The position numbers and the translations under genes are program-made. The notes beneath the pieces are model-generated. The model was given only the letters and a program-made list of their open reading frames with translations. It had not been told where the DNA came from and did no database searches. Below are positions 1 through 14,079 of a DNA stretch of 14,079 bases, in pieces. The stretch's first letter is position 1. Every line of letters starts with the position of its first letter. The stretch spans positions 1-14,079 of the forward strand of contig NW_021825913.1 of NCBI RefSeq assembly GCF_006345805.1. The letters are read 5' to 3'. This stretch comes from Octopus sinensis. Lineage: Eukaryota.

Positions 1-516
1 GGGGTAAAGAGTAGGATACGAAAGCAAGAAGTTTTAAATCTAGATGCCTTTGTTTAAACAAACCCTTCTGTTGCCACTATAACAGAAATGACGAGAAAAG
101 AAAGAATAAAGAACAATGTACAAATAAATCCAAAAGAGACAAAAAAATTTTCAAATACAAATAATTTTTCTTTTTTGCATTCGTGCTTTTGACTTTTGGT
201 TTTTTTGTTTTTGTTTTCGGTGTGTTTGTGTAATTTATGGCCAGTGTCGATAAACAATGCATCACCTCAAGATCAATATTTGTCTATGTGCTGTGACCTT
301 GCTCTGTTGCTGTCATATGTTAAACGCTAATTGACATGTGATCCACTCATGCTCCCACGAACCAACACACCGCGTCAACCTACCACATCCATCGTTTTAT
401 AAATGAACGAAGGGACTTCGGCTTGCATGTTCGACTGATAAGATTGTTTGCATGCTTAAGGAGTTGTGATTGTTGATAGAAGAAGGAAGAATGGTTTCTA
501 ACTTAAGCAGCACAAG

Positions 517-1014
517 GCCACATATTTGAAGATGACAAAGGTTTGATTCGCTGCTCTCTACGTATTTTAACAACCATCGGTATAGGCATAAACCCACATA
601 TTTTAAGTTAACAAATGCTTGCATGGGGGCTCAACGTATTCAAACAGCCGTCGATATAGGCATCAAGCCACGTATTTTAAGATGACAATGATTTGGTTCG
701 GGACTCTTCGCCGTCGATATAGGCAGAAAGCCACATATTTTAAGATGACAGTTGTTTGGTTCGGGACTCTACGCTTTATACGTAGCATAAAGCTACGTAT
801 TTTACGATGACAGATGTTTGGCTTGCTGTTCGACGTATTTCAACAGCCCTTGGTATAGGCATAAAGCCACTTTTTTTTTATGACGACAGAGATTTGATTT
901 GCAGTTCTACGAGTTCAAACCGTCATCGATATAGACATAAAGCTATTTTTTTTAAGATAATAGAAGTTTGATTTGGTGTTCTACGCATTCTAAATACCGA
1001 CACCATAGGCATAA
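517..1014. repeat. Diverged tandem minisatellite, 7 units of ~62-76 bp
   Basis: Units start at about 517, 593, 667, 730, 792, 866 and 942. Hand consensus is GCCACATATTTTAAGATGACAGATGTTTGATTTGCTGTTCTACGTATTCAAACAGCCGTCGATATAGGCATAAA. Units 3 and 4 are about 12 bp shorter. A possible degenerate partial unit lies at ~382-435. Confidence 0.9.
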
Positions 1015-1154
1015 GATGGCAAAAGTTTTTCTTCACAGTAAACGTATGTGACCCACCATCGCTCCAGGCATAAGATCACTGACTTTAGCAAGGTAAATGT
1101 GTTTAGTTTGTCCGTCTGTGTTATAACTGACCACCCCGAGGATCTATAAAAGAC

Positions 1155-1337
1155 ATGCAGAGATGGCTGTATTGTTAGGAACACTGCTTTGCAAACACCA
1201 GGTTTCGGTTTTCAGTTCCATTGAGTGACACACCTGGCAGGTGACTTCTACAATAGTACCGGAATTCCGAGTTGTTCAGAGCATTAAAAGAGATTTTGGT
1301 AGGTGGAAACTGCACAGAAGCCCATCGTAGATGTGTG
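1155..1337 (+). mobile_element. Old tRNA-derived SINE, family 2 head and core
   Basis: Aligns by eye to 13233-13395: ATGGCTGTATTGTTAGG...GGTTTCGGTTTTCAGTTCC...GGCAGGTGACTTCTACAATAG...GATTTTGGTAGGTGGAAACTGCACAGAAGCCCATCG. Confidence 0.7.
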
Positions 1338-1390
1338 AACCATTTCGATGCTTTCTAAAAGCTCGGGAAAAGATAAGAAATGTGTTATTA

Positions 1391-1503
1391 GGCGGCAAAT
1401 TGATGAAAACGCTGGAGCATCGGAAAAATTTCTAGCGGTATTTTTCCGATTCATTACTTTGTGGGTTCAAATGACATCGGGGTCAATTTTGCCTTTGATT
1501 CTT
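1391..1503 (+). mobile_element. Old tRNA-derived SINE, family 1 5' part
   Basis: GGCGGCAAATTGATGAAAACG...AAATTTCTAGCGGTATTTTT...GGGTTCAAAT...GGGGTCAATTTTGCCTTTGATTCTT matches the reverse complement of the copies at 9236-9817. A B-box-like GGGTTCAAAT is present. Confidence 0.7.
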
Positions 1504-1959
1504 GCACCTCTCATCAGAATCGCTAACTTTGTGCTACAATTAAGAAGGATTATTATCAATATTCTTGTTAAACGGTTGACAGTTCTCAGTTGAGAATTCC
1601 TTTCGTATAGCTCAGAAGACGAGATTTGGACATAAAGTGTTGAGCAATGCCACTAAACGCAACTAAGTTCTTTCTCCGACATGCTGCCGCTTCTCTTATT
1701 TACTATGAATGTTTTTTAATGATTTTTAACAGAAACACAAGCCCAAGTATTTGGAATACACAGGAAGTTCTAAATCAGTAACTGACTACAATATAGTGTA
1801 TTATAACCAAAGTAAATGCATCGTGAAAATGCGAATTTACTGCGGTACTCGTCTTGAGATAATAAACTTTTGTGGACGTTCTGTGTCTAAAAACACAACA
1901 TATATTATAACAGTAGCAGACGAAAATCATACAGTTGTGGTGGTGAGAATGCTAAATGC

Positions 1960-2170
1960 GTATTTCAGCTCCGCTGAACAAAGACGAAATCTTTGTCCTT
2001 CGTCCACCGTCTTAAATTACGTTTTCTCCTTTTCGTATGTCCTCTTCTGTATCGTCTGTAATCCATGTATCGTTTGCTCTCGGTCCTATATTCTCCGCAA
2101 CTTTCGCGGGCACCGCCTGCATGGGAAGCATCTCAGTCTCTTCATTAATGGTGTGAAAGTGAGTAAAACT
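1960..2170 (-). mobile_element. Possible highly decayed non-LTR retrotransposon (RTE-like) ORF2 linker fragment
   Basis: The minus strand translates ...AVPAKVAENIGPRANDTWITDDTEEDIRKGENVI*. This loosely recalls the KxxWIxxxT linker between endonuclease and RT in RTE LINEs. No catalytic motif is seen. Confidence 0.2.
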
Positions 2171-2290
2171 ATCTCGTCGGTAACTGATCAAGAATTAGGG
2201 ACATTCTGTGCTTATCTTCCGTCCATTTGTGCACTCCACATGTTATACGTTATTTTTACACGCCGTTTTTGTATTTACAATACACTTTTC

Positions 2291-2407
2291 ATTTATATGT
2301 GCGTGTATCTGTGTGTCTGAGTGTATGTGTGTGTTCGTGTGTGTGTGTGTTCGTGTGTGTGTGTATTTGTGTTTGTGTTTGTATTTGCGTGTGTGTATTT
2401 GTGTGTT

Positions 2408-2440
<33 letters not shown>

Positions 2441-2503
2441 TTGTGTTTGCGTTTGTGTATTTGTATGTGTGTGTGCGTGCGTGTGTGTATGTGTGTATAT
2501 ATG
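2291..2503. repeat. Interrupted (TG)n microsatellite
   Basis: Visible directly in the sequence. Confidence 0.95.
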
Positions 2504-2961
2504 GTAAATGAAATACGGAAGATGAAAGATACGAGAATTTTTATTAATAACTACACTAGTTTCGAGATATCTAGCGTCGATTCCTCACGGGAGGAAGAAT
2601 TCATTAAAACTCACAGGTTTCAGACAATGACGAGCGAAAGAGAAGACGTCATCCTTAAACCAAAACTTGGGTCGAATGCTTAGCAGTGGATTTTTCTCCG
2701 CTAAAGACAAATCTCGTGCTAAACCAGTTGAAGGATCAAGTCAGCCCTGTTTAATATCACCTGCTGGGGGCTAGATTTGAACTTAAGACATACAGTACAG
2801 GACCAAACACTAGAAAATACCGCAAGGTGTGTGACCGATGCGACTTTCGGGCGGATTTGCTTATGTACTTAGTTGTGTCGGAATATTTGTATGCAGATCG
2901 CAGAGAATCGGATTAAAATACTGCGAGATATTTATTTCGACGCTGCTAACCGATCCATCAA

Positions 2962-2962
<1 letters not shown>

Positions 2963-3009
<47 letters not shown>

Positions 3010-3131
3010 GTCGTCGTCGTCGTCATCATCATCCTCATCATCATCAACATGATCATCAGCATCATCAGCACCCAACACCACCACCACCACCACCACCACC
3101 ATCATCATCACCATCATCATCATCATCATCA
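2963..3131. repeat. Compound (CAT)n/(CGT)n/(CAC)n microsatellite
   Basis: Visible directly in the sequence. Confidence 0.95.
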
Positions 3132-3404
3132 TTAATATTCGACATCTTTCTTTCTGTATGTGATATTTTTCCCTCCGAAAACCCCTAGTGGTATGTTTCT
3201 GTGTGGCATGCACAACAACAACAGCGACAAAAACAACAACGCCAAATGCCACGTTTTTGTTGTGCTTTAAGATTAAAAGACAAGGTCAGGATAAATTCTA
3301 AACAGCTCCGTTGACGCAACCAAATTATTTAACTAACATTAACAGAGAACAAACCCCGAAATAAGGAAACAAATTTAGATATTATCGGTGAATCATGAAA
3401 TATA

Positions 3405-3571
3405 TATGTATTTGTATGAGCGCAGCGCGCTCACATTTGTATGTGTGTGTGCATATATGTGTGTGTGCATATATGTGTGTGTGCATATATATTTGAATGC
3501 ATATGCACACACACACACACACACATAAATATAGATGTATATCTGCATCTATATATATATATCTATCTATC

Positions 3572-3630
<59 letters not shown>

Positions 3631-3745
3631 TATGTGTGTGATTGTGTGTGTGTGTGTATGTGTGTGAATATAAACATACACAGAGAACGAGAATGAGAGA
3701 GAGAGGGAGAGAGAGGAGAAAGAGAGAGGGAGAGAAAGATATATA
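3405..3745. repeat. Compound (TG)/(CA)/(TA)/(GA) microsatellite
   Basis: Visible directly in the sequence. Confidence 0.95.
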
Positions 3746-3788
3746 AGAATAACAACGGTTTCTCTCATTTTAGCGCACGCTCGAACGA

Positions 3789-3841
<53 letters not shown>

Positions 3842-4137
3842 GGTGGTGGTGGTGGTGGTGGCGGTGGTGGTGGTGGTGGTGGTGGTGGTGGTGATGAAGA
3901 TGAGGATGGTGGTGTTGGTGGTGATGGTGATGATGATTATGATGACGATGATGGTGATGATGATGATGGTGATGATAACGATGATGATCATGATGATGAT
4001 GGTGGTGCTGGTGCTGGTGATTTTGGTGGTGGAGGTTATGGTGATGAAGGTGGTTGTGGTGGTGATTGTGGTAGTTGTGGTGGTGGTTATAATGGTGGCG
4101 GTGGTAGCAGTGGTGGTGGCGATGATGGTGGTGAAAC
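3789..4137. repeat. Compound (GAT)n/(GGT)n microsatellite
   Basis: Visible directly in the sequence. Confidence 0.95.
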
Positions 4138-4443
4138 CGCGACCTTGCAGCCTAACCAGTTGGTTACACGTCTTTACTCCCGACTCACAGTAAAATATAT
4201 TCATCTCTAATGGATGTTCTCATGGTCACTAGACTTGTTAGAAAAGGCATAATACATACATATATATGTGTGTGTGTGTGTGAGTGTATTTGTATATATA
4301 TAACCCTAAAATTACATTCTTTGAATTATCATAGGTGATTCGGTGATTTTGCTATATACTTTTCGAGGTATGAGTATTGGTCGTACCTAACCCCATTTTA
4401 TCACATGATAAGCATCAAAATATCACCCAGTTAAGTTAATTAT

Positions 4444-4675
4444 AGAAAACTAACAACCTGCATTACACGTCAGGGTCTAACATGGAGCTCACGAAGGAAG
4501 CGGAAGAGTGGATGCCCTAAAGTATGATTGAAACATTAGATACTGAGTTAGAGCTGCAAAATGCAAGGATCCAACAGGATAGAAGCAGGAAAAGACAGCC
4601 CAGCCACGAAAACAGTGGCGAAACTGCAACGATGCCTAGGATCCTATAGCAAGCGGAGGGTTTAAGTAAGGAAAT
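4444..4675 (+). mobile_element. Decayed 3' end of an RTE-clade LINE ORF2
   Basis: From 4444 the frame reads RKLTTCITRQGLTWSSRRKRKSGCPK. After frameshifts it reads EKTAQPRKQWRNCNDA*DPIASGGFK* (stop at 4667-4669), followed by a TAAG/TAAA-like tail. This fits the RTE C-terminal pattern RKxxxxITRQALxWxPxGKRKRGRPK...AQDRxxWR, recalled from RTE elements. Confidence 0.7.
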
Positions 4676-4866
4676 AAAATCACGTTCAAACACTGCGTTT
4701 CAGGACATGTTGGAGTTTCTGCAAGATGGGGAAAAAGATGCAGAGGTCACGGTTTGCACGGTTTGTCTGTCTGTCTGCTAGAGTAGAGATGACGTGCAGC
4801 TGAACAGCAAAAACAACAACACAATATATGCGGTAGAATCTACACCATCAACAGTAGACACAGCAT

Positions 4867-4892
4867 CTACTACTACTACTACTACTGCTACA

Positions 4893-4940
<48 letters not shown>

Positions 4941-5124
4941 GTTGCTACTACTGCTACTATTACTACTACTACTACTACTACTACTACTGTTGCTACTACT
5001 GCTGCTGCTACTACTACTACTACTACTACTGCTACTACAACTGCTGTTGCTGCTGCTACTGCTGCTACTACTACTACGACTGCTGCCACTACTGCGGCTG
5101 CCACTACTACTACTACTGCTGCGG

Positions 5125-5166
<42 letters not shown>

Positions 5167-5440
5167 TTAATTCTGCTGCTGCTGCTGTAGCTGCAATAAG
5201 GTAGGGGATAACAGCAGAGGTTACAGTATCAGAGGCAACACTATCAACACAACAACAACAACAACAACAGCATGGACTGTAACAGCAGAAACAACAACAA
5301 CAGCAGAAAACACCAGAAAACAACAGCTTGAACGACACTGCAACACGAACAATAACCACAGCAGAAACAACAGGAACAACAACACCTACAAACAACAGTA
5401 AGACAAAACAGCAGCACTAACAACAACAACAACAACAACG
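4867..5440. repeat. (ACT)n/(GCT)n microsatellite (4867-5190) followed by a CAA/CAG-rich low-complexity tract
   Basis: Visible directly in the sequence. Confidence 0.95.
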
Positions 5441-5642
5441 ATAGTAGAGTAAACAAGAATAAAAGACGTGACTATAATGGCGGTCTGGAATGAAAGAGAG
5501 AATGGTGGGTGTATATATATTGTATATTTATTCACGTGTAAGGGTAATTTAAAAGAAAATTGTTTACAGTCTTTATAATGGACGGAAAAAATATTTGAAA
5601 AAAATACGCTTAATATTTAAAATGTTTTAACGTTTCGTGTGA

Positions 5643-5841
5643 ATGTGCATTACGTGTATATACATACAGGGCATGCATACATATATACATACATACATAT
5701 ATGCATTCGTACATATATGCATGCATACATGCATATATATGTATATATACATGCATACATGCATATGTAGGAAAGTATGTAGTTTACATATATATATATA
5801 TGTGTGTGTGTGTGTGGATATACATGTGATTATATATATGT

Positions 5842-5882
<41 letters not shown>

Positions 5883-6374
5883 TATGTGTTTATTTGGGGG
5901 TAAAATCATATGCGTCTGCGCATGTCTATGTAAATATATGTATCTAAAGTTATGTATATATACATACATATATATATATATACATATGCAAATGCATGTA
6001 TATGTATGCATTTAAGTGTGTAACTACGAAATATATTCATGCATATATATATATATGTATATATATATGCATATATATATGTATGTATATATATGTATCT
6101 ATATATATGTATATATATATATGTGTGTATATATATGTGTGTGCATATGTATATATATATATATATATATATACATTCGCATACACACGCACATGTCTAA
6201 ATCTATAATGTATGTATGTATGCATGTATATATGCGTGTCTTCAGATTTTGTTAGAGTGTGTATATATTTGTGTGCGTACCTACGTTACACCTGTGTGCT
6301 CACGTATCTCTGTGTATGCAATGTGTGTGTGTGCGTGCGTGTGTGCGTGCGTGCATGCGTGTGTGTGTGTGTCT
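5643..6374. repeat. Compound (TA)/(TACA)/(TG)/(TGCA) microsatellite field
   Basis: Visible directly in the sequence. Confidence 0.95.
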
Positions 6375-6474
6375 GTGTTAGCAGCTTGAGTATTTTATTT
6401 CGCTTAAGTCTGTTTATATACTGTCTGGAGCAGCATTTAAAATTGACGTCTTTTAAGTGGATGGGTTTTTGTCA

Positions 6475-7197
6475 TTGATGATGATGATGATGATGATGAT
6501 GATGACGACGACGACGACGGTAACGGAGACAAAGTCGCCCGCAATGATGACGATGACGACGATGACAACGTCGTTGATGGTGATAACGACAACGGCGATA
6601 GTGTGACGACGGCGACAATGATGAAGATGACAACGAAGAGTTGGTGGAGGAGGAGGGGGATGACGACTACGACGATTACGACGACGACAACGAGAACGAG
6701 GCGGACGATGATGAATATGCTGATGATGATAGTGGTCTTCATCATCATTGCTTTCCTCCTCCTCCTTCTCTTCCTCCCATTTATTGACATCCCCTCTCCT
6801 CCTACTCATCCTCCTCCTCATCATCATCATTGTGTCCATTTCTTCCTTCTCCTCCTCCCCTTCATTATCATCATTCCCCTCCTCCTCCACTTCATCATCA
6901 TTGTATTCCACCTCCTCCTTCTCTTCCTCCCTTTCGTTATCTCCCTCATCATTATCATCATCATAGTCATCATCATCCTTCTCCTCCTCCTCCTCATCAT
7001 CATTGTTTTCATCATCCTCCTTCTCCTCCTCCCTTTCGTTTTCGTCCTCATTATCATCATCATCATCATTATCATCATCATCATCATCATCGTCATCATC
7101 ATCATCATCATCATCGTCGTCGTCATTATCATCATCATCACCATCATCATCATCATCCTCATCATCATCGTCATCATCATCATCATCGTCATCATCG

Positions 7198-7237
<40 letters not shown>

Positions 7238-7255
7238 TATCATCATCATCATCAA

Positions 7256-7310
<55 letters not shown>

Positions 7311-7331
7311 GTCGTCGTCGTCGTCGTCGTC
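6475..7331. repeat. Compound trinucleotide field: GAT/GAC/GGA, then CCT/CTT/CAT/CGT
   Basis: Visible directly. The strand polarity of the repeat flips near 6735. Confidence 0.95.
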
Positions 7332-7389
7332 ATCTTGAGCGGAGTATGGAGCAGACTGTCTGTCATGTTATACGTGTTACGATTGCTTT

Positions 7390-8580
7390 TTTCCTCTCAC
7401 ATCATTTTTCTTGCTGTTGCTGCTGTTGTTGTTGTTGTTGATGTCACTACTATTCTTCAGTGTCCGTTACTTTCATTTCAGATGTTGTTGTTGTTGTTGT
7501 TGTTTTTAATTCCTCCTCCTATCATTGCTGTTGTTCATAACACCGCATTACTTAATGCAACACAAAACACTGTTGCTCCTTGCAGTGAGAGTATTTTTAC
7601 CCCACCTGTTTCTGCTTTTTGTTGCTGTTATTGTTGTAATTGATGTTGTTTTATGGCTCTCATATTTGTTTGTTATTGTTGTTGTTATTTCCTCTTTCGT
7701 CACCGTTGTCATCGTCGTCATCGTCGTCGTCGTTGTCGTTGTCGTCATCATTCTTAGCTCTTTGTCGTTTTTATTATTGTGTCTCGTATTATTGTAGGAA
7801 ACTGCTCACGCTAGTTTGCAGTATTCTTCTCTTATTTATAATATTATTATTTTTATTATTGGTGCTGTTGTTGTTGTTGTTGTTATTCCTTTGTTACTGT
7901 TGTTGTTGTTGTTGTTTCTGCGGATGTTATTACTGTAGGAAACTACTTATACCATTTTGTAATTTTTTCTTATTCTTAATATTGTTATTATGGTTGACGC
8001 TATCACAGTTACTGCCTTTACCATTGTCGATGTTTCTCTTGTTTTTACCGTTATTATCATAGGAATGTGCTCATACCACTTTGTAGGGTTTTTCTCCTAT
8101 ACTCCATATCACTATTATTGTTCCCCTCGTTGTTCGAGTCGTTGTTGCTTTTATTATTATTATTATTGTAGCATTTTCACATATTCTTAACATTGTCCAT
8201 ATTGTTACAATCACTGTTGCTGCTCTTGTTTTTACCGTTCTTGTTTACGCTGTTGTTGTTGTTATTATTATCATTACTATATTCTTTAAAGCTGTTTGTT
8301 GATTTTATTGCCGCTCTTGTAGCAGTTTGTTATTACAGCTGTTTACACTGCACATGGCTTTGTTGTTGCTGGTGTTGTCGTAATTGTTATTGTTGCAGAT
8401 TTGTTTACCTATTGTTGTTAAGAGTATTGCAATTTTACTGTTGCTATTGTAATTGTTTATTTTCTCATTGCTGTTGGTTCTTATTGGAATCTTACTCTTG
8501 TTCTTGCAACTATTGTTGTTGTGGTTTGTTTTATATACATTCTCCATTAGCTGAATTGCATAACTGCCAAATTGTTTATC
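7390..8580. repeat. Degenerate (TTG/TTA/CTG) low-complexity tract, probably an old decayed microsatellite
   Basis: T-rich with 3-base periodicity and short pure GTT and ATT runs. Confidence 0.85.
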
Positions 8581-8754
8581 GAAAGGTTTTCAGTTCGCAT
8601 TCTGTAATATAATATAACTCGACATAAAATTCATCTTTCTAAGACCACCTAAGTTATTTATACTATACAAATTCTTTTGGTTGACAGAGACAGGAAGTAT
8701 TGAACTATTATCGATTGTTTTTGTCAACTGTAAATATATTGCTTCCTAATCAAT

Positions 8755-8930
8755 TGGCGGAATTTGCTGCACACCTGACAAAATGCTTAGCAGTTTTTCG
8801 CCTGTCATTCTGTTCTGAGTTCAAATACCACCAACGTAGATGTTGCCGTCCATCCCCTTCGGGATGAGTACAATACGTACAAGTTAAGCCCTAGGGTCTA
8901 TCATTGTGCCTAGAATAGAAAAAGAATATT
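8755..8930 (+). mobile_element. tRNA-derived SINE, family 1, with internal deletion
   Basis: TGGCGGAATTTG...CTGACAAAATGCTTAGCAGTTTTTCG...TTCTGAGTTCAAATACCACC...CCATCCCCTTCGGG...GGGTCTAT...TTGTGCCTAGAATAGAAAAAGAATA matches the reverse complement of 9236-9438. Confidence 0.8.
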
Positions 8931-9235
8931 TATCTTATTTGACTGATATTCGGTTGTTTTGACTTAGGCGAACATTTCTCAAATAATATGCAATTGGTGT
9001 TGAGGGTTTTCATTTATTAAAACCTGATGTAATTTCCATGGAGTTTTATCGCGGAATTCAAAAAAAGAATCGAACCAGAATGTCACCGAAAGAATATCAA
9101 ATAATACCAATAAGGAAAAACCAGAAAAATTTTATCAAGATTATTACACACACACACATATATGCAAAAATATCCTGTACGTATATTTGCCAGTCATCTT
9201 CTGAAGTGGAAGTTGAGACTTTGCTGCATGGAGAT

Positions 9236-9438
9236 ATTCTTTTCTTCTCTAAGGACAAAGCCCGAAATTGTTTGGGAAGGGACCAGTGAATTAGATCGAC
9301 TCCAGTGAGTAACTGGTACTTAATTTATCGACCCCAAAAGGATGAAAGGCAAAGTTGACCCCGGTGGAATTTGAACTCAGAATATAAAGACAGACGAAAT
9401 GCCGCTAAGCATTTTGCCAGGTGTGCTGACGTTTCTGC
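9236..9438 (-). mobile_element. tRNA-derived SINE, family 1, copy A (tail type 1)
   Basis: The core GATTAGATCGAC..CCAGT...AACTGGTACTTAATTTATCGACCCC.AAAGGATGAAAGGCAAAGT.GACC..GG.GGAATTTGAACTCAG is shared with copies B and C. The B box GAGTTCAAATTCC is on the minus strand. Confidence 0.9.
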
Positions 9439-9440
9439 TC

Positions 9441-9594
9441 AAAGCACCAGGATGGAAATTTTGGAGTAGAGGGCCAGTCGATTAGATCGACCCCATTACG
9501 CAACTGGTACTTAATTTATCGACTTCAAAAGGATAAAATCAAAGTCGACCTCGGCGGAATTTGAACTCAGACAGTAAGGAGAAGAGGAAATACC
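9441..9594 (-). mobile_element. tRNA-derived SINE, family 1, copy B (tail type 1, head truncated)
   Basis: Same core as copy A. It ends at GAAATACC (9587-9594), which overlaps copy C. Confidence 0.9.
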
Positions 9595-9817
9595 TATTTC
9601 TTTACTACCCACAAGGGGCTAAACACAGAGAGGACAAACAAGGACAGACAAGCGGATTAAGTCGATTATATCGACCCCAGTGCGCAACTGGTACTTAATT
9701 TATCAACCCCGAAAGGATGAAATTCAAAGTCGACCTCAGCGGAACTCAGAACGTAGCGGCAGACGAAATACCGCTAAACATTTCGCCTGGCGTGCTAACG
9801 TTCCTGCCAGTTCACCG
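9587..9817 (-). mobile_element. tRNA-derived SINE, family 1, copy C (near full length, tail type 2)
   Basis: Same head and core. It has a different tail (GAAATACCTATTTCTTTACTACCCACAAGGGGCTAAACACAGAGAGGACAAACAAGGACAGACAAGCGG) and a small deletion in the B-box region (GCGGAACTCAG versus GCGGAATTTGAACTCAG). Confidence 0.9.
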
Positions 9818-9996
9818 TGTTGTTGCATGAAGATATTAAATCCATGATAGTTGGTATTTTACTTGGCTTTTACGTATATCTTCAATATCGCTACAGAATA
9901 GTACTTGCTTCCATAATATGTATTTTCATATCAGCCAGTCATCGATCATTCGAGACACGTGTAAAAATATGCTCTGATGACAACTTCACGTCATAT

Positions 9997-10804
<808 letters not shown>

Positions 10805-10960
10805 AGATCTTGGTCCTGCTTGTTTCTGGACGGCCTGATCTACTTAACTAGCGGTGCTAAGCAGGCGGTTATATCAGCACGGTCATTGCTGACAGCCATT
10901 ATATTTAACAAAAGAATAAGACCAAGGATGGTTACACTCGTCTAAGAGTTGACAGGCACC

Positions 10961-10987
10961 ATGTATGTATGTATGTATGTATGTGTG

Positions 10988-11021
<34 letters not shown>

Positions 11022-11027
11022 TGTATG

Positions 11028-11061
<34 letters not shown>

Positions 11062-11326
11062 TGTATGTATGTATGTATGTATGTATGTATGTATCTATGT
11101 ATGTATGTATGTATCTATGTATGTATGTATGTATGTATGTATGTATGTATGTATGTATGTATGTATGTATGTATGTATGTATGTATGTATGTATGTATGT
11201 ATGTATGTATGTATGTATCTATGTATGTATGTATCTATGTATGTATGTATGTATGTATGTATGTATGCATGTATGTATGTATGTATGTATGTATGTATGT
11301 ATGTATGTATGTATGCATGCATGTAT
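10961..11326. repeat. (ATGT)n tetranucleotide microsatellite, ~90 units
   Basis: Visible directly, with sparse ATCT and GCAT variants. Confidence 0.98.
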
Positions 11327-11340
11327 TACGTAGATATATA

Positions 11341-11487
11341 GGTATGTTACTGTGCGGTAAGAAGTTTGCCCCCCAACATATGGCTTCGGGTTCAGCCGTA
11401 TTAAGCGGCACATTGGGCCATGTAATAGCTTTGGCCCGACTAAGGTTTGTGAGTGTATTTAGTAGACAGAAAATGAAAGAAGCCTGT

Positions 11488-11489
<2 letters not shown>
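11341..11489 (+). mobile_element. tRNA-derived SINE, family 2 head and core
   Basis: CTGTGCGGTAAGAAGTTTG...GGCTTCGGGTTCAG...GGCCCGACTAAGGTTTGTGAGTGTATTTAGTAGACAGAAAATGAAAGAAGCCTGTC is homologous to 13233-13395. Confidence 0.85.
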
Positions 11490-11526
<37 letters not shown>

Positions 11527-11653
11527 AGAAGGATGTGAGAGAGAGAGAGAGAGAGAAAGTGAGACAGATATAAACAGACATAGATAAATAGAGTGAGAGA
11601 GAGAAAAAAATACAGACAGACAGACAGACAGACGGACAGACAGAGAGACAGAC

Positions 11654-11716
<63 letters not shown>
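11490..11716. repeat. Compound (TA)/(GA)/(GACA)/(GATA) microsatellite
   Basis: Visible directly. It lies between the SINE core and the mariner left end. Confidence 0.95.
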
Positions 11717-11717
<1 letters not shown>

Positions 11718-11718
11718 G

Positions 11719-12802
11719 CGAGATCTGACCAATAAGTATCCGGACAGTTGCCATAGTAACGAAGTTAAAGCACGCAGTTTTAAGCCGCTTGGCACAAATT
11801 GACTTTGGGCTCTACGGTGCACGTGCATTAAGTTTTAACGTTCTAGCTCGCTTCCGCTATTTACAGCAACACAGTGGAAGCAACACTGTGCTTGTGTAGT
11901 GTGTGATCGTCGCATTAACCATGACAGAGAAAGTTGTCATGGTGATTCCTACTCAGAGGGCAACGCAAAGTTGCAGAAAGTGTATGGAGAAGAGTGTATG
12001 AGCCGCACACAAGTCGACGAGTGGCTTAGACGTTTCTAGGATGGCCGAAAAAAATGTCGATATTGACGAACGTCCCGGGAGGACCGCAACCAGCTGAACT
12101 GAAAGAAACATCGCGGATGTGCGTGCAGCTGCGAGGGGAAATCGTTGAGTCACCATCTATGAGTTATCAGAGGATGTGCAGATTAATTACGGTTCAGTCC
12201 ATTATCACTGAAGATTTGGGTATGAGAGGCGTGTCTGGCAAGTTTGTGGCCAAACTGCTTTCAGCTGACCAAAAAGACACACGGGCATCAGTTGCACAAG
12301 ACCTCCTTGATTGTGTCTAGAACGATGGAATCTTTCTGAAAACTTTGCGTAGGATTGTGAACCGATATCGCTAAGCATTTGGCAAAATTTGATGCAGATT
12401 CTCTGCTCAACTTTCTCTGTCATTGTCAAATGCGACGATCACGCGCTACTCACGTTCCTTCCAAGCATTGCTGTAAAGAGAGGAAGTGAGCTAGAAGTCA
12501 AAACTTAATGCCCATGCACGCACACATATACACACACGCACACATACGCACACACATAAATACACACAAACATACACACACAATAATATTAATGTACGTG
12601 GTCTGATCAATAAGTATCCGGACTGTTACCATAGTAACGAAGCTAAAGTGCTAAGAATAAAACCGCTTGGCAAAGATTGACCTTGAACTCTGCCGTACAT
12701 GCGCATTAAGTTTTAAGGTCAATCTTTACCAAGTGGTTTTATTCTACGTGCTTTAGCTTCGTTACTATGGTAACAGTCCGGATATTTATTGATCAGACTA
12801 CG
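11719..12802 (+). mobile_element. Non-autonomous Tc1/mariner element with a fold-back (long inverted arm) structure, interrupted by an inverted insertion at 12521-12714
   Basis: The left TIR is CGAGATCTGACCAATAAGTATCCGGACAGTTGCCATAGTAACGAAG (11719 onward). The right TIR is ...CTTCGTTACTATGGTAACAGTCCGGATATTTATTGATCAGACTACG (to 12802). A TA target site sits at 12803-12804, and the left one reads TG at 11717-11718. A transposase relic lies inside. Confidence 0.93.
11921..12347 (+). pseudogene. Mariner transposase N-terminal DNA-binding region, with stops, frameshifts and no catalytic domain
   Basis: Reads MTEKV[deletion]GDSYSEGNAKLQKVYGEECMSRTQVDEWLRRF*DGRK/NVDIDERPGRTATS*TERNIADVRAAARGNR*VTIYELSEDVQINYGS/VQSIITEDLGMRGVSGKFVAKLLSADQKDTRASVAQDLLDCV*NDGIFLKTL. 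This shows the mariner HTH pair and a WVP-like linker (KFVAKLL). It stops just before the expected TGDE motif. Confidence 0.93.
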
Positions 12803-12872
12803 TACATTAATATTATTGTGTGTGTATGTTTGTGTATATTTGTGTGTTTGTGTGTGTGCGTGTGTGTGTGTG
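12521..12872. repeat. Near-perfect palindrome: microsatellite flank + TA + TIR, 30-nt loop, TIR + TA + microsatellite flank
   Basis: 12561-12684 pairs with 12715-12838 (for example 12597 with 12802 and 12581 with 12818). There are about 8 mismatches in the TIR part. Looser pairing continues in the CA/TG flanks. Confidence 0.95.
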
Positions 12873-12875
12873 TTT

Positions 12876-13013
12876 GCCCCTTGCTACGCTTGACAACCGG
12901 TGTTGGTGTAAGACCCTGTAACTTAGCGGTTCGCAAAAACCAAGAGCAATATAACAAGAAGTACAGCGCTTAAAAATATGTCGATGGCCACAGTTTGATA
13001 ACTGAAACAAAAG
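12876..13013 (+). mobile_element. Probable 3' part of the family-2 SINE, with deletions
   Basis: CGCTTGACAACCGGTGTTGGTG...CCCTGTAACTTAGCGGTTCG.AAAA...ATGGCCACAGT...ACTGAAACAAAAGA resembles, from memory, the tail that follows the internal microsatellite in this octopus SINE. Not database-verified. Confidence 0.55.
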
Positions 13014-13027
13014 ATATATATCTACGT

Positions 13028-13140
13028 ATACCTGCGTGTATGTTTGTTTGTGTGTGTGTGTGTGTGTGCGTGCATACGTGTGCGTGTGTGTCTATGAGTG
13101 TTTGTATGTTTCTTTGTGCGTATAAACAATATGTGTGTAT
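13028..13140. repeat. Interrupted (TG)n microsatellite
   Basis: Visible directly in the sequence. Confidence 0.9.
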
Positions 13141-13232
13141 ATCATTATAAAATTATATTGATGTAATGGTATCGATTTGATATAGAAAGCTTTTGATATA
13201 CAATCCGCTAAACACAGTGATTATTTTATACC

Positions 13233-13395
13233 GGTACACGTGTGGCTGTGTGGTAAGAAGCTTGCTGCACAATCACATGGTTCCGGGTTCATTCCTACTG
13301 CGTGGGACATTGGACAAGTGTCTTCTACTATAGCATTGGGCCGACTAAAGCCTTGTGAGCGGATTTGGTGGACGGAAACTGAAAGAAGCCCGTCG
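13233..13395 (+). mobile_element. tRNA-derived SINE, family 2 head and core (best-preserved copy), followed by a TA/TG tract to ~13439
   Basis: A-box-like TGGCTGTGTGG (13243-13253) and B-box-like GGTTCATTCC (13286-13295). The core ends GGACGGAAACTGAAAGAAGCCCGTCG. Confidence 0.9.
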
Positions 13396-13439
13396 TGTGT
13401 ATGTATGCATGTATATATATATATATGTACATGCATATA

Positions 13440-13744
13440 TTGACCTTGAACTCTGCCGTGCATGCGCATTAAGTTTTGACTTCTAGCTCACTTCCTCTCT
13501 TTACAGCAATGCTTGGAAGGAACGTGAGTAGCGCGTGATCGTCGCATTTGACAATGACAGAGAAAGTTGAGCAGAGAATCTGCATCAAATTTTGCCAAAA
13601 GCTTGGCGATATCGGTTCACAAGCCTACGCAAAGTTTTCAGAAAGATTCCATCGTTCTAGACACAATCAATGAGGTCTTGTGCAACTGATACATGTGTGT
13701 CTTTTTGGTCAGCTGAAAGCAGTTTTGACACAAACTGGTAGACA
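13440..13744 (-). mobile_element. Inverted duplicate of part of the mariner element, including its fold-back junction
   Basis: 13457-13744 is the reverse complement of 12232-12520, with about 13 differences by hand count (~95% identical). On the plus strand it reads MTEKVEQRICIKFCQKLGD from 13554. Confidence 0.95.
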
Positions 13745-13790
13745 AATCGAACAAATCGACCCAAGGACTTCTTCGTAAGCCCAGTACTTA
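13745..13790 (-). mobile_element. Possible short reversed fragment of the family-2 SINE tail
   Basis: The reverse complement TAAGTACTGGGCTTACGAAGAAGTCCTTGGGTCGATTTGTTCGATT resembles the recalled SINE tail. Not database-verified. Confidence 0.4.
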
Positions 13791-13793
13791 AGC

Positions 13794-13851
13794 ATAACGA
13801 CACATCACTCTCGTAAATCACATGTATAACGACATATCACTCTCGTAAATC
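13794..13851. repeat. 32-bp tandem duplication
   Basis: ATAACGACACATCACTCTCGTAAATCACATGT is followed by ATAACGACATATCACTCTCGTAAATC, with 1 mismatch over the shared 26 bp. Confidence 0.9.
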
Positions 13852-13880
13852 CTATACATGTGAGTGTGCAGTCGAATCTC

Positions 13881-13950
13881 AGTGTGTGTGTGAGAGAAAG
13901 AGAGAGAGAAAGAGAGAGTGTGTGTGTGTGTGTGTGTGTGTTTGTGTATG
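13881..13950. repeat. (TG)/(GA) microsatellite
   Basis: Visible directly in the sequence. Confidence 0.9.
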
Positions 13951-13992
13951 CAGACAAGAGGAAAAGAAATAGAAGACAAGACTATTACTCTT

Positions 13993-14079
13993 AGCCCTGA
14001 TCAGCTGATCTTCCTATGCAGCGTCTGCGGTCGTGTCTGTTCGTCCTGAACCGGACTCGTCAGGGATCACCAAACCCGC
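13993..14079 (+). mobile_element. Possible C-terminal zinc-finger relic of an RTE-type LINE, running off the window
   Basis: Translates SPDQLIFLCSVCGRVCSS*TGLVRDHQTR. The TGA at 14047 could be a decayed CGA. It resembles the CxxCGRxCxSRIGLxSH terminal finger of RTE ORF2. Confidence 0.4.

Follow-up and report, generated by a model that had tools for sequence, protein, structure and literature searches.

How could the end of a transposon, together with the host DNA lying outside it, come to be duplicated in inverted orientation at a single locus? This question is raised by a stretch of DNA from Octopus sinensis (RefSeq assembly GCF_006345805.1, contig NW_021825913.1, positions 1 to 14,079 of the forward strand; 14,079 nucleotides (nt), hereafter the window), in which the right end of a decayed mariner-like element, designated E1, forms an imperfect palindrome with the sequence beside it. 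An initial annotation of the window proposed that the palindrome includes host DNA beyond the TA target site and that it arose by a replication template switch rather than by a second insertion. From the sequence comparisons described below, it is likely that an old, one-off switch-and-return template switch within the right end of E1 made the palindrome. Positions are numbered from the first nucleotide of the window throughout, and the coordinates of the individual features are collected in Table 1.

Inverted symmetry across the target site

The imperfect palindrome occupies positions 12521-12876 (356 nt) about an axis at 12699.5, with paired positions following p+q=25399 throughout (ungapped mirror map). 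A repeat search of the window returned arms of 165 nt each at 12523-12687 and 12712-12876, which are 88% complementary and separated by a spacer of 24 nt, and self-BLAST of the window aligned 12520-12877 with its own reverse complement at 85.8% over 366 columns. Computational alignment of the arms, proposed as a check in the initial annotation, confirmed the palindrome and found it slightly wider than had been noted, with 80/88 matching positions in the element part of the arms (mirror map) and 39/41 between the flank at 12556-12596 and its mirror.

Both TA sites lie within the mirror symmetry, and the claim that the symmetry passes beyond the TA was borne out by the unique flank, in which CAATAATATTAATG is the mirror of CATTAATATTATTG and the 14-mer ATAATATTAATGTA, TA included, agrees with its partner at 14/14 positions, the runner-up match in the window reaching 12/14. 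Outside these sequences, an imperfect (CA)n repeat reaching 12521 and an imperfect (TG)n repeat reaching 12876 continue in register. The further claim that the symmetry enters the microsatellite held in part: both AAA interruptions of the repeat coincide in register, at an offset set by the element, but pure (CA)n agrees with its partner at 33/37 and 25/27 positions against 32/37 and 23/27 for unrelated CA tracts, and so adds little beyond background. On these alignments the symmetry is accepted out to approximately 12556, and over the outermost 35 nt of the palindrome it is likely but unproven.

Between the arms lies a loop of 30 nt (12685-12714), of which the first 9 nt are GAACTCTGC and the remainder agrees with the reverse complement of 12500-12520 at 19/21 positions. 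When folded as single-stranded DNA, the palindrome region gives a predicted energy of -156.5 kcal/mol (z = -27.8 against 100 shuffles); with arms that are 88-91% matched and a spacer of 24-30 nt, extrusion of a cruciform is only a possibility.

Colinearity of the right end after removal of the insert

Positions 12521-12714 were deleted by script, and the reverse complement of the resulting join was aligned with the left arm of the palindrome, the left end of E1 and C3, a second, inverted and truncated copy of the element further along the window; the ancestor in this comparison is a proxy taken from paralogous and distant copies. With 12520 joined to 12715, the right end of E1 is colinear with all three references, and the sole gap is one of 9 columns that corresponds to GAACTCTGC at element positions 89-97 (alignment A2). 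The inner right end of E1 resumes at position 98, and the outer part supplies positions 88-1. The initial annotation had stated that the loop holds a 9-mer missing from the forward path, and GAACTCTGC is indeed the only sequence lost when 12520 is joined to 12715. Because the join is colinear apart from a single 9-column gap, and the missing segment is held in the loop, the alignment identifies the right arm as E1's own outer right end and the left arm and loop as an inserted reverse-complement copy. The 9-nt fit, together with the 21 nt that make up the rest of the loop, further suggests that the 194 inserted nt are a reverse-complement copy of one continuous ancestral stretch, which ran from 21 nt of the inner end through the 9 nt and the outer end to the TA and ~72 nt of the flanking host DNA.

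Host origin of the flank and the possibility of an independent insertion

Relatives of the element were found with a stitched protein, in which the reading frames of E1 were joined and combined with 5' codons of C3, at ~58-67% protein identity, and the surrounding DNA of four of them was retrieved: L002 (soil metagenome), L003 (Logan assembly), L004 (land snail Bradybaena similaris, both element ends present) and L005 (ENA assembly). Seven termini were aligned (A5: both palindrome arms, the left end of E1, L003, both ends of L004, and L005), and their homology starts directly after the TA, or after a TG in the case of the left end of E1. The 25 nt outside the TA are unrelated among these termini and identical only between the two palindrome arms. 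As the homology of the relatives begins after the TA and their flanks are unrelated, the flank of the palindrome is assigned to host DNA outside the element; the initial annotation had named a flank belonging to the element consensus as the finding that would overturn its proposal, and the corresponding flank was unrelated in the left end of E1, L003, L004 and L005. The 9-nt segment is present at the same place in C3, the left end of E1, L002 and L003 (alignment A4), and in L005, and its occurrence in L002, L003 and L005 argues that GAACTCTGC is standard element sequence.

These observations bear directly on an alternative in which the unit at 12597-12802 is an independent two-ended miniature inverted-repeat transposable element (MITE), inserted into a TA that marked the exact midpoint of an older host palindrome of the form (CA)n-AATAATATTAATG-TA-CATTAATATTATTG-(TG)n, beside an unrelated truncation of E1 at 12520. 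The unit does have two intact termini (12597 and 12802), a TA on both sides and a length typical of MITEs (206 nt), two-end MITEs of mariner type are known, and the target motifs of transposons tend towards palindromy (PMC4168063). However, known target motifs are weak preferences over a few nt rather than 14/14 identity followed by matched repeat interruptions, and flanks that mirror each other, first over 14/14 unique positions and then through repeats in register, are unlike ordinary target DNA. The alternative would also require three coincidences: a host palindrome of 2 x 75 nt with the insertion exactly central, an E1 cut at position 98 beside a right arm that starts from position 88 and completes E1 but for 9 nt, and a left arm that finishes exactly where E1 stops. 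The palindrome junction was not found again in the window or in metagenome contigs. An independent insertion is accordingly considered very unlikely, and the contention of the initial annotation that the structure is neither a second insertion nor a mini-MITE is supported by the mirror-image flanks and the 9-nt fit with E1.

A different line of evidence put forward in the initial annotation, namely three variants common to both arms and absent from the left terminus at 11719, proved less informative. All three variants are present as described, but the left end of E1 is an outlier, at 77-80% identity to every other copy (BLAST), and C3 has ATTGACCTT too, so the shared variants cannot separate a local copy from an independent insertion. 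The use of shared variants for dating or polarising the copy also failed, owing to the same outlying left end and to overlaps with C3 that were too short.

A probable four-point template switch within the right end of E1

Under the proposed mechanism, E1 would at first have had an ordinary right end abutting the TA and host CATTAATATTATTG(TG)n, and the unrearranged join that we infer would read ...CATGCACG-GCAGAGTTC-AAGGTCAAT... (also written CATGCACG-GCAGAGTTC-AAGGTCAATC). During replication or repair synthesis, the growing strand would have come off its template at element position 98 (12520) and moved to the complementary strand ~72 nt past the TA, near 12876. Copying would then have run backwards across the flank, the TA and the outer element end, passing the point of departure and continuing up to position 118, before the strand returned to the original template at 12715 (position 88) with 9 nt skipped. 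The product would consist of three fragments, F1 (to 12520), F2 (12521-12714, the reverse-complement copy) and F3 (from 12715), with switch points 1 at 12520, 2 near 12876, 3 at 12500 and 4 at 12715, that is, in the order 3-1-4-2.

In the published four-point model, the output is F1, followed by the reverse complement of the sequence from point 2 back to point 3, followed by F3, and under the order 3-1-4-2 F2 must overlap points 1 and 4, so that a short inverted spacer comes to be enclosed by two inverted repeats (PMC5453318). The inserted fragment fits this model, as it mirrors 12715-12876 plus 12500-12520, which is adjoining sequence, and the loop consists of the 9 nt lost from the forward path plus the 21 nt of 12500-12520, as the order 3-1-4-2 predicts (PMC5453318). 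The exact 9-column gap likewise supports the proposal of the initial annotation that synthesis left at 12520, copied the opposite strand back and resumed 9 nt further on.

With point 2 ahead of point 1, self-copying by the nascent strand is not possible, which implies a switch between strands. The copy crosses the point of departure and holds the 9 nt lost by the forward path, suggesting that the template was intact; this favours a fork or sister chromatid over the simple snap-back of a broken end. Intramolecular snap-back as the sole mechanism was rejected because the copy spans the break site and holds the lost 9 nt. Neither of the new junctions coincides with an element terminus; there is thus no indication of transposase chemistry, and a transposase-made rearrangement, by alternative or sister-chromatid transposition, was rejected for this reason. 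A mirror description of the event yields the same order of points, so synthesis may have run in either direction.

Several points weigh against a single template switch. Microhomology at the present-day junctions amounts to 0-1 nt, none of it convincing, a value that is uninformative because of decay since the event, and the ancestral state is drawn from paralogous and distant copies only. Point 2 sits in a fast-evolving microsatellite and its position is only approximate, and both the 194-nt length of the copied fragment and the order 3-1-4-2, which accounts for 1% of human-chimpanzee events and is the rarest class (PMC5453318), are unusual for the four-point model. The target-site dinucleotide at the left end of E1 (11717-11718) is TG, not the TA found on the right; the phase of the preceding (GATA)n repeat predicts a TA at this position, and one A-to-G change would explain the difference. 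Finally, the search for copies of the 206-nt two-ended unit covered the window and metagenome contigs only.

Divergence of the arms and the possibility of an artefact

The arms differ at 10/129 non-repeat positions (8 transitions and 2 transversions; Kimura two-parameter distance 0.083), with indels between them in the repeat tracts, and derived changes are seen on both arms when polarised by eye against the left end of E1 (alignment A5). This level of difference points to an old event, after which the arms have diverged by ~8%, and it also speaks against a fold-back artefact of assembly. Such an artefact, in the form of a fold-back chimeric long read or a mis-join, deserves mention because the region is flanked by microsatellites, which disturb assemblers, and long-read data are known to contain fold-back chimeras. 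The arms of a chimera would be almost identical, which is not the case here given the 10/129 substitutions, the repeat indels and the presence of changes on both arms; moreover, both outer flanks run into distinct unique sequence and the junctions correspond to an exact 9-nt gap in the element, leaving an artefact as a highly improbable explanation.

Of the eight differences in the element part of the arms, four cluster at 12649-12653 of the left arm, where GTGCTA stands in place of the GCACGT shared by the right arm and the left end of E1. The cluster makes the local sequence GCTAAAGTGCTAAG, a near direct repeat, and may be a small templated multi-base mutation.

The parent element, its second copy and more complex histories

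Within the window, mariner-like sequence is confined to 11719-13736 (BLAST). Inside E1, positions 11817-11936 align in inverted orientation with 12519-12408 at 78.5% (BLAST), and from approximately 12321 onward the right half of the element is the reverse complement of its own 5' end, with no normal 3' end; E1 is therefore best assigned to a derivative with very long inverted ends. After the ATG, it carries frame-shifted remnants of the first ~140 codons, and a minus-strand open reading frame (ORF) at 12205-12429 reads MTEKVEQRICIKFCQ...; this 74-aa ORF gave no candidates in a protein search. The stitched protein matched Pfam HTH_48, the Mos1-type N-terminal helix-turn-helix (HTH), at 33.2 bits (cut-off 24.1), as well as SETMAR (E = 2.9e-4) and Mos1 transposase (E = 1.7e-3) in the PDB. 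A search with it gave 816 homologues at E <= 1e-10, and among named relatives of the transposase fragment the closest comes from a land snail. The DDD catalytic domain (Pfam Transposase_1) is not present in E1, only the ~140 first residues of the protein remaining, and by its sequence the element is classed as non-autonomous.

The element family as a whole has a fold-back build, in which ~400 nt of 5' sequence lead into a reverse-complement copy of the 5' end that comprises the terminal repeat, the leader and ~105 nt from the start of the ORF. The fold-back junction at ~12321-12332 in E1 recurs in C3 at ~13645-13657, and this common junction suggests that an earlier inverted duplication made the long inverted ends of the family. 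The ~200 nt from terminus to ATG are conserved at ~73-76% at the DNA level in relatives from unrelated samples (L003 241-455, L005 254-555 and L002 250-417), with proteins only ~65% identical; the leader of this mariner lineage thus seems to be under constraint.

The inner right end of E1 forms a second inverted repeat with C3 (12241-12520 and 13457-13736; 280 nt, 96.4% identity, 10 mismatches of which 6 are in the first 66 nt, spacer 936 nt). Past 12241 and 13736 the two copies stay homologous in a poor and heavily gapped alignment, and the other boundary of the repeat coincides exactly with the palindrome junction at 12520. The repeat has the appearance of a tract of gene conversion between two inverted copies, both old, or else of a second copying event. 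Recombinational inversion between the two halves of this block was also considered on paper and does not yield the observed pieces.

That the 96% block ends exactly at the palindrome junction could potentially indicate a multi-step or differently directed history. In one version, the left arm would have begun as the end of another copy, with the right arm duplicated from it; in another, a double-strand break in the right end of E1 would have been repaired with several template jumps, C3 being among the donors, with the block and the palindrome resulting from one complex event. The divergence of the block (10/280) is not significantly below that of the arms (10/129; Fisher p = 0.08), and template switching in gap repair has been documented for mariner-derived MITEs (PMC3814204). 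The block boundary at 12520 is trivial, however, if later gene conversion halted where homology halts, and C3, which retains positions 76-97, was not copied from E1 as it stands today. The mirror version, for its part, needs the loss of the remainder of a second element, its chance abutment with E1 and a chance 9-nt fit. Such histories are considered unlikely in comparison with a single template switch.

Relation to known systems

The event at E1 is classed, from the arrangement of its fragments, as a template-switch mutation of a known kind, and is neither a new insertion nor a new system; no function is implied. It shares with the short template-switch mutations described previously (Loytynoja & Goldman 2017, PMC5453318; Walker et al. 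2021, PMC7954356) a single switch and return, a reverse-complement copy and the creation of a hairpin in one step. It differs from them in an F2 of 194 nt, where the literature calls the events 'short', in belonging to the rarest order, in its site at a transposon end and in an ancestral allele that we infer. Published template-switch screens left out repeat-masked fragments, and genome screens that mask repeats will miss events of this type.

A closer parallel among transposons is the Goblin MITE, derived from Ozma in Aedes aegypti (Yang et al. 2013, PMC3814204), for which it is proposed that a Tc1/mariner end was likewise inverted by a template jump to give a two-ended palindromic unit; for hairpin or long-inverted-repeat MITEs, the proposed origin is template switching in gap repair (PMC3814204). 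In contrast to Goblin, the host flank was copied at the present locus and the parent element remains where it was, the junctions fall within a single end and so do not point to gap repair after excision, and no movement of the product is known. Unlike two-end mariner MITEs, the palindrome has flanks that are mirror images, as would not be expected of a transposed MITE. With the mariners of the Mos1 family, E1 shares the Mos1-type HTH, a TA next to its right terminus and terminal sequence conserved with snail and other invertebrate copies, but it is without a catalytic domain and its right half is an inverted 5' end.

Fork stalling and template switching or microhomology-mediated break-induced replication (FoSTeS/MMBIR) and origin-dependent inverted-repeat amplification (ODIRA) act over kilobases to megabases, usually with pre-existing inverted repeats. 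They similarly produce an inverted copy through a polymerase jump between strands; PMC10766183 and PMC11293582 concern replication-based inverted duplications of this type. The event at E1 covers less than 400 nt by comparison, and it created the repeat itself.

The locus offers an unusually clear example, in that transposition can be excluded, because host DNA beyond the TA was copied together with the transposon end, and the four switch points are readable from the sequence. It suggests that template switching can palindromise a transposon end in place, and would provide a concrete intermediate for the proposed origin of hairpin MITEs. As a side effect of the event, the locus now has two outward-facing element termini, each beside a TA. 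It is conceivable, though improbable, that the 206-nt TA-bounded two-ended unit at 12597-12802, made in one step without transposase, is the progenitor of a hairpin MITE family. If the unit was later mobilised, the locus would be the birthplace of such a family, and the copied host flank would directly prove that replication error, as opposed to internal deletion, can give rise to MITEs of this type. Were the unit transcribed, the RNA would form a hairpin of ~165 bp directed against the ends of the element itself. The locus, a single and old one, changes no current view.

DNA pattern scans gave no match to the terminal repeat in viral contigs or metagenome contigs and no match to the palindrome junction in metagenome contigs, and the terminal sequence was not found in the full text of papers. 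A single match in prokaryotic genomes (L001) was discarded as a chance 22-mer in a bacterial coding sequence.

Feature coordinates

Table 1. Features of E1, its palindromic right end and the second copy C3, in window coordinates
Feature	Position	Strand	Description
E1, decayed mariner-like copy, classed as non-autonomous	11719-12802	+	1084 nt today; ~899 nt predicted for the unrearranged element
E1 left end: terminal repeat, leader, ATG at 11922	11719-11936	+	Homology to relatives begins at 11719; preceded by (GATA)n
Inner part of E1 right end, element positions 98 and inward	12241-12520	-	Stops abruptly at 12520, putative switch point 1; 96.4% identical to 13457-13736 in inverted orientation
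Sequence from which the innermost 21 loop nt derive; a further, small inverted repeat expected under order 3-1-4-2	12500-12520	-	12500 is putative switch point 3
Inserted fragment F2	12521-12714	+	194 nt, putative reverse-complement copy: flank, TA, outer right end, 9 nt and 21 nt of inner right end
Copied host flank	12521-12596	+	(CA)n 12521-12582, CAATAATATTAATG 12581-12594, TA 12595-12596
Left arm, element positions 1-88 (copy)	12597-12684	+	80/88 to its mirror 12715-12802
GAACTCTGC, element positions 89-97	12685-12693	+	In the loop, absent from the forward path of E1
Rest of loop, element positions 98-118	12694-12714	+	Copy of 12500-12520
Right arm, assigned as E1's own outer right end, positions 88-1	12715-12802	-	12715 is putative switch point 4
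Putative TA target-site duplicate, right end of E1	12803-12804	.	Homology with relatives ends exactly there
Original host flank	12805-12876	+	CATTAATATTATTG 12805-12818, then (TG)n; putative switch point 2 at or near 12876
Palindrome junction sequences			Junction 1, CCCATGCACGCACACATATAC; junction 2, GCATTAAGTTTTAAGGTCAATC
C3, second inverted truncated copy of the element	13433-13736	+	In-window reference for the intact 76-118 segment

Other repeats in the window

The window is eukaryote-like and rich in microsatellites. No exact product was on record for its ORFs at 12767-12973 and 1751-2320 in a look-up, and scans of the window with Rfam and for tRNA genes (ARAGORN) gave no match. A short interspersed nuclear element (SINE)-like repeat is present in two copies, ~78% identical, at ~11345-11523 and 13241-13432, each with a (TA)n/(TGTA)n tail; the second adjoins C3 and truncates it at element position 76. 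Neither copy was recognised by ARAGORN or Rfam, and we take them to be reminiscent of the tRNA-derived SINEs of cephalopods. A 9-nt tandem duplication (CAAATCGAA x2) lies at 13741-13760 within the decayed ORF of C3, and just past it there is a 26-nt direct repeat at 96% identity (13794-13819 and 13826-13851).

Directly upstream of the first SINE-like copy and E1, a (CA)n tract at 10000-10791 (800 nt, 403 units, 88% matches) is followed by an (ATGT)n tract of 366 nt at 10961-11326. Trinucleotide arrays of (TCA)n, (ATG)n/(TGG)n and (CTA)n, 170-430 nt each, occur at 2963-3132, 3789-4133, 4867-5166 and 6867-7310 and include a 105-nt higher-order unit, and the segments 3778-4066 and 7053-7341 are mutually inverted at ~71-76% identity. 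A further tandem array at 497-1086 comprises ~7 copies of a 63-76 nt unit at 60-89% identity.

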